From the sequence record MW812343.1: 64,000 nucleotides of DNA. One strand, given 5' to 3'. A model generated the notes under the pieces. That model worked only from the letters and a program-made list of their open reading frames with translations, was not told the DNA's origin and searched no databases. A program made the position numbers and the translations under genes. How positions within the stretch are numbered: the first letter of the stretch is position 1; each line of letters opens with the position of its first letter. Positions 3,482-64,000 of this stretch are shown here, in pieces.

Positions 3482-4236
3482 TGCGCAAGGTATTCAGTGA
3501 AATCTTAACGATGCACACGGATAGCCTGATGCGGGGGTTGTGTGATTACGCATACATGACCTACATCAAAGGGCGTGCCGAGGTGGGGATTGGTGACGCA
3601 GTACCGAATTTCGATTGCGCGACAATCAGTCGTAAAGCGATGGCGGAGGTGGTAGCCCAGTTATTGATAGATGCAATTGCTTCCATCAACGGTAACGCTG
3701 GATACGATTTCCATCAACGTTTGATGATTCCTCGTGTTCCAACTGCCAAATACAAAGCGTGGCGGGAATCAGGGAACTGCGGGATGTTCACCATCGAAGA
3801 GATGTTTGACGCCCACTGCCGTGAACTCCCTGCATCTGAGTTAGTTATCGGCGCAATGAAATGGTACACCACCCGCTTCGTGAATGAGATTTACAACCTC
3901 TTCGGTGGGGATGACCAAATCGGTTGGGAAGGCACGGCAGTTATCTTTACGCAACGCGATATGTTGGTGCAGCAGATACTGGATGACCGCGTTTGTCTGG
4001 CATTGTTGGAGCAAGGCGATTACGAGTTTGCTGCCGAGGTGGAGGACATTACAGACCTGCGTGATGAACTGTTCCAGTGGCCGTTCTCTTTTGTGATGCA
4101 GGACGACATTCGGGCGCTGCAAGAAAGTATCCCGACGTATATCCTGCCCGCAGAAGACCAAGACTCTGAGGAGAAACTGGGGGTCGAACTCTACGTCTTA
4201 AAACCGGGGGTTATTGATAAAATCAAAAAACTCTGA
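3481..4236 (+). CDS. Hypothetical protein (251 aa)
   Basis: ATG 3481 overlaps the RNase H stop (TAATG); upstream part of listed ORF 3349 overlaps RNase H. Confidence 0.7.
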   Translation: MRKVFSEILTMHTDSLMRGLCDYAYMTYIKGRAEVGIGDAVPNFDCATISRKAMAEVVAQLLIDAIASINGNAGYDFHQRLMIPRVPTAKYKAWRESGNCGMFTIEEMFDAHCRELPASELVIGAMKWYTTRFVNEIYNLFGGDDQIGWEGTAVIFTQRDMLVQQILDDRVCLALLEQGDYEFAAEVEDITDLRDELFQWPFSFVMQDDIRALQESIPTYILPAEDQDSEEKLGVELYVLKPGVIDKIKKL

Positions 4237-4257
4237 GATAGATATTATCTTGGTGAG
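4236..4257 (+). promoter_or_regulatory. Early-promoter-like motif (copy 1)
   Basis: AGATAGATATTATCTTGGTGAG, similar to motifs at 12974, 46078, 60262, 62038. Confidence 0.55.
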
Positions 4258-56447: not shown

Positions 56448-58559
56448 ATGATTTTACGTGAACGTGATTGGGGTTATTATCCGGGCTCTCTGGCGGACGA
56501 TACCACCAAGAACAAACACTTTATGTATTTCGCCGACACCTTAAAAGGGCTCGGTGTAAAGCACTGGTATTTGCATCTTGCACTTCTCGACCCGGAACTG
56601 CAAGGGGTAGATCCGCACGACCCACATTTGACTGTTGAACAACAGGCGCGTGTGATTGCAGAATGTGCACGTAACCCGTGGTACTACATCCGTGAATGTC
56701 TACGCGTCCCTGCCGATGGTACGGACGGGGTACCGTTCAAGATTGACCGCGGTAACTTCGCGATGTTTTGGATCTTCTTCAACAACATCGACGTGGCCAT
56801 CGAATTCCTCCGTCAGCACGGTAAAACAGTCGGGATGTGCTCGCTGTTAAGTTGGTTACTTCGCTTCCTTGAGAAGTCACGTACGATTCTGGTCACCAAA
56901 GGACCGGTGCTGCGTGAAGAAACCATCACCAAACTGAAAGAGCTGCGTAACTGTCTGCCGAAGTATCTGTGGCCTATCCACCCAGATGACCCAGACAACA
57001 AAGAAGCCTTTGCGTGTATGGCGCAGGGCAACAAACTGATTACCGCGATTGGTCAGAACGATGAACAATCTGCAAACGGTGTGGGCCGTGGTTTAACCGC
57101 CGGTCGTCTGTTCTCGGATGAGGGCCCCTTCACCAACAACATCCACATCATCCTACCTGCGGCACTGGCATCCGGTACCGCTGCACGTAACATTAACGAA
57201 GCCTCTGGCGTACCTTACGGTAACGTGTTCGCAACAACCCCTGGGGATTTGGCGACACCAGAAGGTCAGTACATGTACGAGCTGATGACGTCCGGCATCA
57301 ACTGGGATGAGCGCTACATTGACATCGCGACGCGTCAGCAACTGATTGACATGATTCGACACAACTCCACGTCGAAGATGCCACGTATCATGTTCTACGC
57401 GAAATTCAACCACCGCCAACTGGGCACCACCGATGAGAAGCTCGCAGACATGATTGCGAACGCCACGGGTAGTCCAGACCAAATCCGTCGTGACTTCGGG
57501 GGTGAGTGGACGACTGGGGGCTTTAACAAACCCTTCTCTGGTGACGATGCTCGCCGTATGAACGGGTCACGCGCCCGCGCGACGTACAAAGATATCAGCC
57601 CGGCTAACTACATCACCGATTGGTATTACACCGAGATGGAAATGTCGACGAAACTTCACGACCGCCACATCATCGGTCTGGATACCTCGGAGGCAGTCGG
57701 GCGCGATGCCATCGCGATGTCTATCGTGAACTCCGTCACGGCAGAGTATGCTGGGAAAATGACCGTCAACGAAACCAACGTCATCGGGTTTGCGATTCAC
57801 CTCGCTGACTTCATGGAGCGGTTCCCGAACACGGTGTTAATCCTTGAACGTAAGTCAACCGGTTCCTCGGTAGCGGATGCGATTATCCTTCAGTTGCAAT
57901 CTCGTGTACGTGACTTGCACCGTCGTCTGTATGTCCGTATTACAGACAGCTACAGTCGTAACGACGAATTGTATAAGGAGTATGCTCGTGGGCCTGCTGG
58001 CGGTAACGCTGAGCGGTTCTGGGACAAATTCCGTAAATACATCGGCTTTACTACGGATGGTGATAAACGTCGGAAATTATATGGTGAGGTCTTCACCATG
58101 GCTCTCCGTTTATCAGCCCACTTACTTCGTAGTGGTGAACTCATAGACCAAATCCTTGGTCTGGTAGAGCGCAACGGACGCATCGACCACCAGAAGTCAG
58201 GTCACGATGACTTGGTTATCTCATGGTTGTTAGCAATGTGGCTGCTTTTGTTTGGTAAGAACCTGAACCATTACGGAATTACCAACAACCGGCTAATGAT
58301 TCGCAATCGCAATATCCTTGTAGGTGGAGACGTATCTGGAGACGAGGACGCGATGGTCGAAGAGGAGGAGAAGCAACAGCAACTGATGGGTGAGATTGAA
58401 GAGGTGATGAAGCAGAGTATGGGTGTAACCTGTCCTGTGCGCCAAATGACCCTGCGCAATCGACTCCAATCCCTCATCGCTCAACTCAACACTGATATGC
58501 GCAACGTCGCATCGATGGAAAGCTTGAAAGAGCTTATCCAGCGCCAGAGGATGAAGTAA
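56448..58559 (+). CDS. terL: Terminase large subunit
   Basis: RNPWYYIRE, Walker A LRQHGKT, Walker B LFSDEG, nuclease IIGLDTS and HDDLVISW; RBS AGGAGG before ATG 56448. Confidence 0.93.
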   Translation: MILRERDWGYYPGSLADDTTKNKHFMYFADTLKGLGVKHWYLHLALLDPELQGVDPHDPHLTVEQQARVIAECARNPWYYIRECLRVPADGTDGVPFKIDRGNFAMFWIFFNNIDVAIEFLRQHGKTVGMCSLLSWLLRFLEKSRTILVTKGPVLREETITKLKELRNCLPKYLWPIHPDDPDNKEAFACMAQGNKLITAIGQNDEQSANGVGRGLTAGRLFSDEGPFTNNIHIILPAALASGTAARNINEASGVPYGNVFATTPGDLATPEGQYMYELMTSGINWDERYIDIATRQQLIDMIRHNSTSKMPRIMFYAKFNHRQLGTTDEKLADMIANATGSPDQIRRDFGGEWTTGGFNKPFSGDDARRMNGSRARATYKDISPANYITDWYYTEMEMSTKLHDRHIIGLDTSEAVGRDAIAMSIVNSVTAEYAGKMTVNETNVIGFAIHLADFMERFPNTVLILERKSTGSSVADAIILQLQSRVRDLHRRLYVRITDSYSRNDELYKEYARGPAGGNAERFWDKFRKYIGFTTDGDKRRKLYGEVFTMALRLSAHLLRSGELIDQILGLVERNGRIDHQKSGHDDLVISWLLAMWLLLFGKNLNHYGITNNRLMIRNRNILVGGDVSGDEDAMVEEEEKQQQLMGEIEEVMKQSMGVTCPVRQMTLRNRLQSLIAQLNTDMRNVASMESLKELIQRQRMK

Positions 58560-58786
58560 TGACTCAACTCTTTTATCTAGCGGTAGCAATAGTTTGGATC
58601 GCCATGTTTGTGTCCATACACCACATTCACGGCGTTGTTAAACAACATGCCATTCAGAACAATCTCTCGACGATGGTCTTGCTTCGATCGCAAGCCTTCG
58701 CCATTACCGGAATGATTGTGCTGGGTGCCATCGCGACATCAGGGATGCATTACGTTTATACACTACACCAACTCTCGGTTCTGTAA
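58559..58786 (+). CDS. Small two-TM membrane protein
   Basis: TAATG overlap with terL; two hydrophobic segments. Confidence 0.6.
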   Translation: MTQLFYLAVAIVWIAMFVSIHHIHGVVKQHAIQNNLSTMVLLRSQAFAITGMIVLGAIATSGMHYVYTLHQLSVL

Positions 58787-60261: not shown

Positions 60262-60282
60262 GGATAGATATTATCATTTTGA
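60262..60282 (+). promoter_or_regulatory. Early-promoter-like motif (copy 4)
   Basis: GGATAGATATTATCATTTTGA in a divergent gap. Confidence 0.45.
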
Positions 60283-60307: not shown

Positions 60308-61438
60308 ATGAAAAAATTACTGAGAAAACAAGACTGGAATCATAAGTACCATTCCCCAGAGTTCGACAAATCCACACCGGTGATTGTCTGGAAACTCGAC
60401 CACGGCTGTCTGTGTACCTTACGTACCGTAGGCGGAATGGTCGTTATTGAAAATGGCACGTATTCTGCCGCCAACACCCTACTGGCTCGCTTACTGACGG
60501 AAGCGGGTATTACAGGCGACATCACGATTCATACCACGGCACTCATTCCTCAGAATGTGTCGCGTTGGTTGACGTGGTGGTTGTCAACGGAACCGGAAGA
60601 GGACGACCCGCATCTGCGGACACTCACTATCTCTACCATGGGGCAGATTCCCACCAAGAAGCTGCCATTCCAAGTGAACGTTATTAAACCCGCGACAATG
60701 GAAGCGAACGAAGTGCTTGACTACGTTCGTCAAAGTTCTCGCAATCCTTCGGTTTCACAATTCCTCGTGGAGCACGGAGAACAGGTATATCGTCTGGAAC
60801 CAGAACGTCGGACGGAAGCAAAGATTGTCGACTGTACGTCACGCGGATATGTTTTACGTACCCAGTCCAATCACGTCTTCCTCACGAACATGGTCTCGAG
60901 ACGAATACAGGCGCAACTCAAGGCTAAGAACTTGAGGCCCGAAAACCTCATTGGTGCCACCGTGAGGGTAGAATACACAATGTTTACTGACGGGAACCGT
61001 CTGTGTAACTATAAGTCACCCATTGTGTATCGCTGTACCGATTTGGACACATTGTGTCCAGATGCCATCCCCCCATACGATGGTCCCTTCATGTTCCTTA
61101 GTAACCAGCCATCCAACAACGCGCTGTTGACAGCCACCCGATGTGGACGGGCCAGGATTACACAAAACGGGGATTCTATCATTGGGTGCGATGGGGAGTC
61201 CGATCTGCAACTGTTCCGCTTCACCAGGGGCGTCGAGGATGGCTGCTATGCAGCTACCCTTGAACGGCAAGGGCAGTCGGAGGATTGGCGTTTCGAATCT
61301 GATTTAGCGACAGATGCTCTCGATCCCGAGGCATTCGTCCGATGCGTAGAGAGCCATCTCTTTCATTCAACCGGTTATCTCTTGCGGGGAATCAGACTCA
61401 AATACGTTGATAGGACAAACACCCCAACGATGACATAG
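60308..61438 (+). CDS. Hypothetical protein, degenerate ATP-dependent DNA ligase-like fold
   Basis: VWKLDHG resembles motif I KxDG; LIGATVRVEYTMFTDGN...SPIVYR resembles the ligase OB domain/motif VI; RBS AAGGAG. Confidence 0.4.
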   Translation: MKKLLRKQDWNHKYHSPEFDKSTPVIVWKLDHGCLCTLRTVGGMVVIENGTYSAANTLLARLLTEAGITGDITIHTTALIPQNVSRWLTWWLSTEPEEDDPHLRTLTISTMGQIPTKKLPFQVNVIKPATMEANEVLDYVRQSSRNPSVSQFLVEHGEQVYRLEPERRTEAKIVDCTSRGYVLRTQSNHVFLTNMVSRRIQAQLKAKNLRPENLIGATVRVEYTMFTDGNRLCNYKSPIVYRCTDLDTLCPDAIPPYDGPFMFLSNQPSNNALLTATRCGRARITQNGDSIIGCDGESDLQLFRFTRGVEDGCYAATLERQGQSEDWRFESDLATDALDPEAFVRCVESHLFHSTGYLLRGIRLKYVDRTNTPTMT

Positions 61439-62109: not shown

Positions 62110-62754
62110 ATGACTGATTTTATTCGCGTCCCAACACTGAAAACCCTCCTGCCGGAAAACGCCGATTTGGATTTTCACTACGCCATTAACACGGTGGAGA
62201 AGTCCGCCAGCGAATCAGCTATCGTCACCAGTTGGACGATGATGAAGGAAGGTCATCCTGAGAAGGTCGCTATGGCTGTACAGGAAGGCCACTGCGTGAC
62301 TTTTCCGTTCTTCCTGAACGTAACCCTACCTGAGATGGAAAACATCGCCAAAATGGCGTACAGCGACGTTAAGGTCATTAACGTGTTTTCCAAAGACCAA
62401 CTCCCAACCGCAGAAGGGTGGACGATGTTCACCTGTAACTACAAACCCACCAAAGCCCTCTCCGTGAGTGGTGAGTATTCTTTCGAGCCGCGTGAGGTTG
62501 CAGGCTTGGCGGATATCCACACCTGTCACGGTAGCGCACTGGTTGCGATTGCGCCGGGGTGTTCTGCCCTCATCCTGAAAGACGAAGCACGCAGCGCGCC
62601 ACTCTGGAAGTTGATTGAGGAAATTGCAGCAGTGTCGTATGCCGAAGGCCGTGAGTTTTCGATACAGGCCATGTCGGCGGATTGGGGGATGGCGTTGGAT
62701 GACAACCCTAACTTCGAACTGCACAATGTAACCCTGACGAAAATGTTAGGGTAA
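62110..62754 (+). CDS. Hypothetical early protein, possible GNAT-like C-terminal half
   Basis: 214 aa, RBS GAGG; monocistronic between early promoter and terminator. Confidence 0.7.
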   Translation: MTDFIRVPTLKTLLPENADLDFHYAINTVEKSASESAIVTSWTMMKEGHPEKVAMAVQEGHCVTFPFFLNVTLPEMENIAKMAYSDVKVINVFSKDQLPTAEGWTMFTCNYKPTKALSVSGEYSFEPREVAGLADIHTCHGSALVAIAPGCSALILKDEARSAPLWKLIEEIAAVSYAEGREFSIQAMSADWGMALDDNPNFELHNVTLTKMLG

Positions 62755-62761
62755 GAAAATC

Positions 62762-62790
62762 GGGGAGCTTCGGCTCCCTGTTTTTTTTTG
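62762..62790 (+). terminator. Rho-independent terminator, UUCG loop
   Basis: GGGAGC-TTCG-GCTCCC plus T9. Confidence 0.9.
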
Positions 62791-63790
62791 TTTTTTGTTG
62801 TCCTGTCGTGACTACTCGAGCAAAGTTGTTCACTTTTTAACCATGGGGTAAATTCGCTCTCAAACGGTTTTTGAGATGGGGTTCTACCGACCCAGTACAC
62901 TTGGGTTCCAGATACCCAGTTCGTTAAGCAGAGAGTCGCACAGCGCGAATTTGAGCCGGTTGCAAATCGATTTCCGGGCGAGGGTCGTCGCCGAGCGCCG
63001 CCGATGCCGATCAAACGTTGGGGTGCGCTTGCGCGTTTTCAGGATCAAATTCAGGAATTCTGGACAAACGAATCTTCGTGAGTTTGTCTGAATTTGGTTG
63101 TTTTTTAACCGACTAAACTCCCCGGCCTCTAGCCGGGATCGAGATCGGCTTAATTTAAAAATTTTTATTTTAAAAACAAGCACTTAGGTGAGATCTTATC
63201 CCCGATCCTGAACCCCCTCCGGGGTTCAGGTAAAAAGTCCTTTCATTATACGCGTGCACGCGCACGCCATTTCCTACAGGATCTTTTAAAAGAATAATAA
63301 TTATTATTAAATATATATATCCCGTAGGGATAATATTTAATTATTAAAATATATAAACCCGTAGGGTTTTAAATAACTATCGCGCGTGATCCTTATTACG
63401 AGATCTGATCCGGGAAACGGGGATCGGAGGGAAATCGAATTACAAGTTTTCCCAGTTCTATGCACGACGAACCAAACGCTTGCCCGAATCATCCTCGGGC
63501 CTTTTTCGAGAATCCACGATGCGGGTTCTGGACAAAGCCACCGGGACAGCCTAACACTTCCCAACGCGTTTCAGGTTCCGGTCAGAGACTCGGTGGTTGC
63601 CATCGACGAGACCGGTACCGTGGTAGCCCCGTGTACACCGGAGTAATCTCCAACGGGAGGTTGATCCACATCTTGGCGGCTCGGAAAGACGAGAGGGGGA
63701 TGTCCTCACGCTGTGAAGCGCTGGGATGTCGCTGAATCGGATTTTTTACAAACTTGGGTGTTCCTGTGTTCAAACCCAATCACCAGTACC
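62791..63790. other. ~1-kb non-coding region, candidate replication origin/control locus
   Basis: No credible gene; 11 GATC in 63009-63425, AT-rich core 63284-63380, multiple inverted repeats. Confidence 0.5.
63304..63369. repeat. Two AT-rich direct repeats, each with a CCC-GTA-GGG hairpin (37-bp period)
   Basis: TTATTAAATATATATATCCCGTAGGGATA and TTATTAAAATATATAAACCCGTAGGGTTT. Confidence 0.8.
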
Positions 63791-63802
63791 AGGGAAATCA
63801 TC

Positions 63803-63985
63803 ATGACTCCAGAACAACGTCGCCGCCGCGACGAGGAAGAACGCTGTCGTCGTCAGTCCTCACAACGCGGTTACACGCCGGGTTATAACCCGGTCGATGA
63901 TTCGCCGTACTACGGCGGAGATGATTCGTCACCTTCGGGTTGCGATTCCGGTTCTGACAGTGGCGGCTCTTGCGGCTGCGACTAA
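63803..63985 (+). CDS. Small protein with Arg/Glu N-terminus and Ser/Gly/Asp/Cys tail
   Basis: RBS AGGGA before ATG 63803; 60 aa; next gene starts at 63998 with RBS GAGG. Confidence 0.65.
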   Translation: MTPEQRRRRDEEERCRRQSSQRGYTPGYNPVDDSPYYGGDDSSPSGCDSGSDSGGSCGCD

Positions 63986-64000
63986 GCGAGGTAAACCATG

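Follow-up and report, generated by a model that had tools for sequence, protein, structure and literature searches.

The last 64 kb of the record of the Erwinia jumbo phage pEa_SNUABM_6 (MW812343.1; 240,164 bp; Machinavirus, SPN3US-like; host Erwinia amylovora), the 64,000 nucleotides that we call the window, contain a dense cluster of GATC tetranucleotides around an AT-rich core. This cluster, referred to here as the GATC island, was proposed in an original prediction made from the letters alone to be an oriC-like candidate for a replication origin. Positions are those of the window unless marked as record positions, from which 176,164 is subtracted to give the position in the window; the whole genome was pieced together from four annotated stretches and the window, with identical overlap, 62700-64000 being 100% identical to the end of the record, and each of the 282 features in its annotation is either hypothetical or a tRNA. 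The island lies in a gap of 1049 bp between annotated coding sequences (CDSs; 62755-63802), described originally as the only gene-free stretch of about 1 kb. It is the largest inter-CDS gap of the genome, but it is not gene-free, as a candidate structured RNA lies within it, and relatives have small genes in the homologous gap. The features of the locus are collected in Table 1.

Each of the eleven GATC positions of the original prediction (63009, 63043, 63137, 63143, 63192, 63204, 63280, 63388, 63402, 63407 and 63422) was correct, and the three GAGATC copies that it counted lie at 63141, 63190 and 63400. The enrichment is in fact stronger than was claimed, as the genome rate gives 0.74 sites per 417 bp rather than about 1.6: the genome holds 424 GATC in 240,164 bp, or one per 566 bp, and the window holds 135 against 262 expected from dinucleotide shuffles. 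Genome-wide, GATC is the most depleted of the 256 tetramers, level with CTAG, at an observed/expected ratio of 0.34 under a second-order Markov model. The next most depleted tetramers of the whole genome are CATA (0.55) and TATG (0.66), as would be expected if stray TATG start sites were avoided. The island is the densest GATC cluster of the genome, with 11 sites per 417 bp compared with 5 per 417 bp in the runner-up. When 424 sites were placed at random this density was reached in none of 2000 trials, and an analytic estimate from the Poisson tail puts the genome-wide chance of such an island at ~3e-6. The four right-hand sites fall inside 38 bp. The hexamer contexts, taken from left to right, are CGATCA, GGATCA, GGATCG, AGATCG, AGATCT, CGATCC, GGATCT, TGATCC, AGATCT, TGATCC and GGATCG; such heterogeneous flanking bases fit a reader of GATC or of its methylation state, and not of a longer word.

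Conservation was assessed in 15 genomes or contigs across Machinavirus (SNU6, SNU10, Huxley, pSal-SNUABM-04 and SNU43), a metagenomic relative, the Caitlin/ChrisDB/SNU9 group, Erskinevirus (Asesino, phiEaH2 and one uncultivated virus genome, UViG), Seoulvirus (SPFM4) and the Wellington lineage (Wellington and one UViG). A scan of IMG/VR with a 16-base core motif gave mostly chance matches, with true relatives solely among contigs of ~240 kb. The GATC enrichment, whose loss in relatives the original prediction had held to be decisive against it, is kept: 12 of the 15, representing at least three genera, carry 7-11 GATC in their homologous ~480 bp, against one per 390-1194 bp in the flanks. At least one lineage bears GATC at each of 20 alignment positions, and two sites are invariant, one at the left end of the island and one, found in 15/15, within the motif TCCTnCAGGATCTTTT at the left border of the core; one further site, within GTGATCCTTATTACGAGATC at the right border, is present in 13/15. 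With so few invariant sites among 20 positions used, it is the GATC density itself that appears to be selected. The Caitlin/ChrisDB/SNU9 subclade, a natural comparison group, has 2-4 GATC left, including the two invariant ones, and retains both dam and the AT core.

The same data bear on the simplest explanation, in which the cluster would have arisen by chance or neutrally, in non-coding DNA full of palindromes and hairpins and under relaxed selection against GATC. GATC is indeed palindromic, inverted repeats are plentiful in the region and one subclade has lost most of its sites. Relaxed selection, however, predicts ~1.6 sites per 417 bp and not 11, the genome-wide probability given above speaks against chance, and contact with a hairpin stem is limited to 3 of the 11 sites. 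The density is, moreover, maintained in several genera at non-homologous positions, a conservation pattern that contradicts this account, and we regard it as very improbable.

The core between the two GATC arrays had been described as almost pure A/T, which overstates its composition: it is 83.5% A+T and includes two CCCGTAGGG hairpin cores. It is the top A+T 100-bp stretch of the 240-kb genome (83/100) and also its least stable 100-bp duplex, with a nearest-neighbour free energy (dG) of -102 kcal/mol against a mean of -142.4 (s.d. 6.1). This places it ~6.6 s.d. under the genome mean, the next-lowest 100-bp stretch standing at -112.7. The core contains two dyads. The symmetry of the first is retained in other genera with changed stems (AATATCT/AGATATT and AATACCT/AGGTATT, read off the alignment), and the second becomes ACTC/GAGT in Caitlin and SNU9. 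Immediately around the core, AGGATC and GATCCT form an inverted pair, and alternating purine-pyrimidine tracts stand on both sides. That on the left, TATACGCGTGCACGCGCACGC, is the longest GC-rich tract of this kind in the genome, and its shorter counterpart on the right, CGCGCGTGAT, is longer in other genera; such GC-rich tracts would restrict melting to the core. One GATC opens an AT tract, GATCTTTTAAAAG; there is a single GATC-led 13-mer-like tract and not three. None of the conserved motifs of the island recurs elsewhere in the genome, and the layout is single-copy.

On the left side of the island, four hairpins have stems that vary in sequence between genera with pairing maintained; the stem at 63063-63088, for example, has changed and yet is still paired in Erskinevirus, Seoulvirus and Wellington, as read off the alignments. 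The motif TTTTAAAAACA-N3-ACTTA, which is retained across genera and has no second copy in the genome, may be a promoter directed into the core. The ~210 bp that follow the terminator of CDS 00281 are conserved within Machinavirus alone. No hidden protein-coding gene was found to the left of the island, there being no open conserved frame in 62790-63100, and the annotation of Huxley gp277 (L002, 3126-3326) is unsupported, its frame being not conserved or interrupted in close relatives. A long inverted repeat (62960-62975 / 63430-63445) was dropped as a candidate, as it is not conserved in Huxley in an alignment judged by eye.

The phage has a Dam homologue of its own. The protein, annotated as hypothetical, is 40% identical to E. 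coli Dam over residues 5-267 (tblastn, E = 3e-63) and matches the Pfam family PF02086 (D12-class N6-adenine methyltransferase) with E = 1e-52. The DPPY motif and the NR(H/Y)GYNGLCRYN block are conserved in the alignment, as are residues K9, Y119, N120, L122, R124 and P134, which we take to be those that contact GATC in the EcoDam structure. From this similarity the gene is predicted to encode a Dam-family methylase with GATC as its target. Orthologues of dam are syntenic in all SPN3US-like phages, the Caitlin subclade included, and in this phage a presumed early promoter (see below) stands three genes upstream of dam, at record position 98133. Taking the density, its conservation and the methylase together, we infer with confidence that the island is a selected, single-copy, cis-acting DNA element tied to the phage Dam, and it is most likely the phage's own methylase that marks it.

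Table 1. Features of the GATC island, its surroundings and its proposed partners, in window positions except where marked as record positions
Feature	Position	Strand	Remarks
Large terminase TerL (annotated hypothetical)	56448..58559	+	PHROG 2, E 1e-62; 4.4 kb upstream of island
CDS 00279, ATP-dependent DNA-ligase-like fold	60308..61438	+	presumed early promoter at 60264
Intrinsic terminator of CDS 00281	62761..62790	+	left end of non-coding stretch
GATC island	63009..63425	.	11 GATC: 7 left and 4 right of AT core
Invariant CGATCA	63008-63013	.	GATC at 63009
Hairpin GCGC-TT-GCGC	63025..63034	.	small, conserved; compensatory changes between genera
Hairpin GACAAAC...GTTTGTC	63063..63088	.	followed by T-run at 63100-63107
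Hairpin CCCGGC-CTCTA-GCCGGG	63121..63137	.	compensatory changes; GATC 63137 overlaps 3' end
Motif TTTTAAAAACA-N3-ACTTA	63168..63186	+	cross-genus conserved, genome-unique
Perfect 10-bp hairpin CCTGAACCCC-CTCC-GGGGTTCAGG	63207..63230	.	GATC 63204 overlaps foot
Alternating purine-pyrimidine tract TATACGCGTGCACGCGCACGC	63247..63267	.	left of core; Z-DNA-prone, GC clamp
Left arm AGGATC of inverted pair	63278..63283	.	within motif TCCTnCAGGATCTTTT
AT-rich core	63284..63380	.	83.5% A+T, 97 bp; candidate DNA-unwinding or cleavage core
Core hairpin/dyad 1	63318..63332	.	TATCCC-GTA-GGGATA
Core hairpin/dyad 2	63355..63369	.	AAACCC-GTA-GGGTTT
Shorter alternating tract CGCGCGTGAT	63381-63390	.	right of core; longer in other genera
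Right arm GATCCT of inverted pair	63388..63393	.	within motif GTGATCCTTATTACGAGATC
Promoter-like variant TTACAAG-N12-TATG	63440..63462	+	predicted start near 63462, 37 nucleotides past last GATC
Candidate structured RNA (free RNA or long leader)	63462..63747	+	covariation support
Promoter-like motif TTTTTACAA-N13-TGTG	63743..63768	+	ahead of CDS 00282 (63803-63985)
Second promoter-like motif, copies and variant	window 63743, 63440; record 3637, 19539, 61801, 96449, 103373, 157521, 157673, 160903	+ (63743, 63440)	9 of 10 copies on + strand; 63440 is the variant
Dam homologue (annotated hypothetical)	record 100132-100953, outside window	+	tblastn with E. coli MG1655 dam

To place the island among the transcription signals of the phage, the promoter-like motifs of the genome have to be considered. 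The 12-mer ATA[GT]ATATTA[TC]C followed by t.GGTGAg occurs in 25 copies, all of them on the + strand and ahead of genes. Its fuller form is cAGATA[GT]ATATTA[TC]C-t.GGTGAg, with copies in the window at 4238, 12977, 46080, 60264 and 62040 and 20 others in the genome. AT-rich early-promoter motifs are known in jumbo phages with virion RNA polymerases (PMC7598289), and since the 25-copy motif fits these, its copies are presumed to be early (virion RNA polymerase) promoters. With a matrix for this motif the 25 real sites score 23-58, higher than anything else in the genome. Outside the island, all AT-rich, low-stability peaks of the genome coincide with presumed early promoters; the island itself contains no copy of the motif, the best matrix scores there being 7.9 and 6.0.

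These observations lead to a reading of the core as a set of unusual promoters or bidirectional terminators between the early gene 00281 and the structured RNA/tRNA region, with the GATCs serving as a Dam-sensitive switch on those promoters, comparable to pap, agn43 and Mu mom. It draws first on the coincidence of the remaining AT-rich peaks with the 25 presumed promoters. The two best matrix scores in the island (7.9 on the minus strand at 63340 and 6.0 on the plus strand at 63311) also fall on core hairpin 1 and lie above the 99.99th genome percentile, although they are far under those of the real sites and high A+T alone inflates such scores. Furthermore, the core hairpins are marked as terminator-like whichever strand is read, the right-hand GATCs precede the start predicted for the structured RNA by ~40 to 74 nucleotides, and the region is dense in covarying hairpins. 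As terminators, however, these hairpins are weak, their stems having 6 bp of which 3 are G-C, and because all genes here are on one strand a bidirectional terminator would be without obvious use. Known Dam switches have 2-4 GATC in one protein-binding site. The island, with 11 over 417 bp, is unlike these, and the other promoter copies of the genome are all without a GATC array. We consider a role of this kind unlikely.

A second promoter-like motif, TTTTTACAR-N13-T[AG]TG, has 10 copies in the genome, 9 of them on the + strand. In phiKZ, late promoters have TATG at the start site (PMC7598289). The second motif resembles this late motif, and the variant to the right of the island would place a start near 63462. 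Together with the candidate promoter on the left, promoter-like motifs are thus found on both sides of the core, which supports its use as an origin.

The reading that we rank first, tentatively and without calling it probable, is that the island is a candidate for the primary replication origin of the phage. This ranking follows from the extreme, GC-clamped unwinding core, the GATC density without a shared longer word, the presumably early dam, the T4-like replication proteins and the adjacent promoter-like motifs; SPN3US-like phages have a T4-type polymerase and UvsX (PMC5694885). A broader proposal, which we hold to be doubtful, is that this would be the first identifiable origin of a nucleus-forming (chimalliviral) jumbo phage, licensed by the phage's own Dam, with GATC stripped elsewhere and the methylated island read by a phage factor. 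At such an origin the core would open under negative supercoiling, and phage Dam would write N6-methyladenine in the flanking GATCs inside the phage nucleus. The Chimalliviridae phage nucleus probably excludes host factors, host Dam probably among them. The methylated GATCs would then lower duplex stability or recruit a phage reader, a need for methylated DNA that would parallel oriC and P1 oriR, and transcription from the adjacent promoter-like motifs may help the T4-like replication proteins to enter, as at T4 oriF/oriG and the T7 primary origin. The origin would not be of the DnaA/SeqA type.

Comparison with known origins shows partial likeness to three of them. E. coli oriC has 11 GATC in 245 bp. 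The island shares with it dense GATC beside an AT-rich unwinding element, a Dam-positive setting and heterogeneous GATC flanks, and has a GATC that starts the tract GATCTTTTAAAAG in the manner of the oriC 13-mers; it differs in having neither DnaA boxes nor repeated 13-mers, in being symmetric with the core at its centre, and in the phage origin of its methylase, and by sequence no SeqA homologue was found in the phage. P1 oriR has GATC-containing repeats in an AT-rich segment and fires only on methylated DNA, and it has DnaA boxes and RepA iterons. The combination of a GATC cluster with an AT-rich segment is common to P1 oriR and the island, in which the boxes and iterons are absent. T4 origins consist of a promoter and an unwinding element. 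T4 oriF/oriG and the T7 primary origin resemble the present case through the T4-like replication proteins and the unwinding-prone AT stretch beside phage promoter-like motifs, and differ from it in that the island is without a confirmed promoter into the core; the candidate motif at 63168-63186 is genome-unique. We know of no GATC array or methylation dependence at these T4 and T7 origins. A cis site with clustered GATC for Dam is thus of a known kind (oriC, P1 oriR and P1 pac), and it is the biological setting that is new.

Several results weigh against an origin. No exact DnaA box (TTWTNCACA) is present in 62755-63810, and with up to two mismatches there are 5 against 4.2 expected; neither iterons nor the IHF consensus WATCAANNNNTTR were found in the region, and phmmer and tblastn found no SeqA or MutH homologue in the phage. 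GC and AT skew, computed for the assembled genome as the original prediction had suggested for GC, follow gene orientation only and carry no origin signal. Since every other AT-rich peak is a presumed promoter, the base rate favours a transcription element, and since Caitlin, ChrisDB and SNU9 keep dam with 2-4 GATC, most of the sites must be dispensable. More generally, T4-like phages have several origins and recombination-dependent replication at their disposal, and a lytic phage has little to gain from sequestration in the style of oriC. With DnaA boxes, IHF sites and iterons absent and skew uninformative, the island is not a member of the oriC family. What survives of the oriC-like candidate first proposed is therefore the conserved GATC excess, the least-stable core and the Dam, now found in the phage itself, and what does not is any sign of DnaA boxes, SeqA or a skew signal. 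Its author knew of no mapped origin for phiKZ-like phages, and none came to light here: in the literature searched we found no mapped origin, pac site or termini for phiKZ/SPN3US-like phages, nor any report of this GATC island.

A packaging site, named as an alternative in the original prediction, has gained support from the phage's own Dam, the two-sided GATC arrays and the position of TerL. In a pac site of the P1 type, terminase and a specificity factor would bind the methylated GATC arrays, bend the AT core and cut within it, headful packaging following, and the methylation state set by phage Dam would select which concatemer copies are cut. P1, too, encodes its own Dam. The P1 pac site is 161 bp long, with seven GATC hexamers that flank an IHF site and the central cleavage site, and methylation controls its cleavage (PMC10028697). 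The likeness to the island extends to the phage-encoded methylase, headful packaging and GATC arrays that stand to either side of a central region of ~100 bp, in which the P1 cut is gated by methylation; on the right of the island core, the array is as tight as four sites within 38 bp. TerL lies on the same strand, and the chance of such closeness in 240 kb is estimated at ~0.04. Headful packaging is assumed for the group (PMC6256631; PMC5694885).

A weak further point is that base 1 of the SPN3US record (L018, 1-113) apparently falls inside the island, ~96 nucleotides upstream of the TCCTCCAGGATC motif. The choice is possibly arbitrary; base 1 of public records is set by convention, and for the BYU phages by alignment to the family (PMC6256631).

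The P1 site and the island nevertheless differ in their construction. The P1 sites are seven copies of one hexamer, TGATCA/G, within 161 bp inside pacA and with an IHF site, whereas the island has 11 sites with flanks that differ at almost every one, extends over 417 bp, is intergenic and has no IHF consensus in its region. In general, pac sites are usually inside a small-terminase gene, and no small terminase is found among the genes between TerL and the island, which comprise PHROGs of unknown function, the ligase-like CDS 00279 and CDS 00280, whose predicted structure is poor (pLDDT 55). To our knowledge none is known in the SPN3US-like group. In addition, dam apparently belongs to an early operon, unlike what would be expected of a late gating enzyme, and the SPN3US literature assumes T4-like, sequence-independent packaging (PMC5694885). 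A pac site is, in our judgement, improbable, to the same degree as the transcription reading, yet it is to be taken seriously as a rival of the origin, and a still smaller share of the probability is kept for functions other than those discussed here.

Whether as origin or as packaging start, the island is a precise, conserved, single-copy candidate of ~450 bp, and phage Dam is an identifiable trans-acting partner, accessible to knock-out. If an origin or pac site were mapped here, it would explain why a phage whose DNA is shielded by a protein nucleus has a GATC methylase of its own, and would provide a handle for jumbo-phage vectors that can be replicated or packaged in laboratory strains.

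To the right of the island, the region 63462-63747 is nearly invariant among machinaviruses, with compensatory changes. In the 3' hairpin of this candidate RNA (63696-63733), 98% of the alignment cells hold standard pairs compared with 87% in shuffles, none of 500 shuffles equalling it; seven pairs are altered on both sides, and controls slid along the alignment are 33-50% paired. The G-U pairs of this hairpin would be A-C on the opposite strand, which indicates an RNA of the + strand. The motifs CTTTTTCGAGAAT, CGACAAAGC, CCTAACAC and GGCTCGGAAAGACGAGAGGGG are conserved in the RNA across genera. When the window and four relatives were scanned with Rfam, the RNA was assigned to no family, and the matches otherwise obtained were one tRNA and a sub-threshold one to int-alpA in Wellington. 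In several relatives the structured RNA extends into a small CDS, so that it may be a long leader.

Within the RNA region, 139 nucleotides that are present in Huxley (L002, ~3870-4010), pSal-SNUABM-04, SNU10 and SNU43 are missing from the window (63606-63612), the deletion sitting between two TAGCCCC repeats. As the length of this indel is not a multiple of three, the region does not behave as coding sequence. The annotation of Huxley gp278 (L002, 3706-4119), which overlies the structured RNA and the non-triplet indel, is likewise unsupported. SNU6 and SNU43 are also without the small gene, Huxley gp279, that comes next in relatives.

Five genes lie between TerL and the island. The CDS 00279 adjoins the region in all relatives examined, and its model (pLDDT 87.6) matches the Chlorella virus, T4 and T7 ligases in Foldseek (E 2e-7 to 5e-6). 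Nucleotidyltransferase and OB domains are present and the KxDG motif was not seen in the consensus; on this model, catalytic activity is uncertain. A ligase-like protein at this position does not discriminate an origin from a pac site. The gene immediately upstream of the island differs between genera, and a 75-aa ORF (open reading frame) at 58559-58786 overlaps the stop codon of TerL. In Wellington (L021, 12464-12973, + strand), a 169-aa ORF inside the RNA-homologous region gave a match to HNH_3 (E = 2e-5; 24.6 bits against a cut-off of 24.8) and may encode a homing endonuclease.

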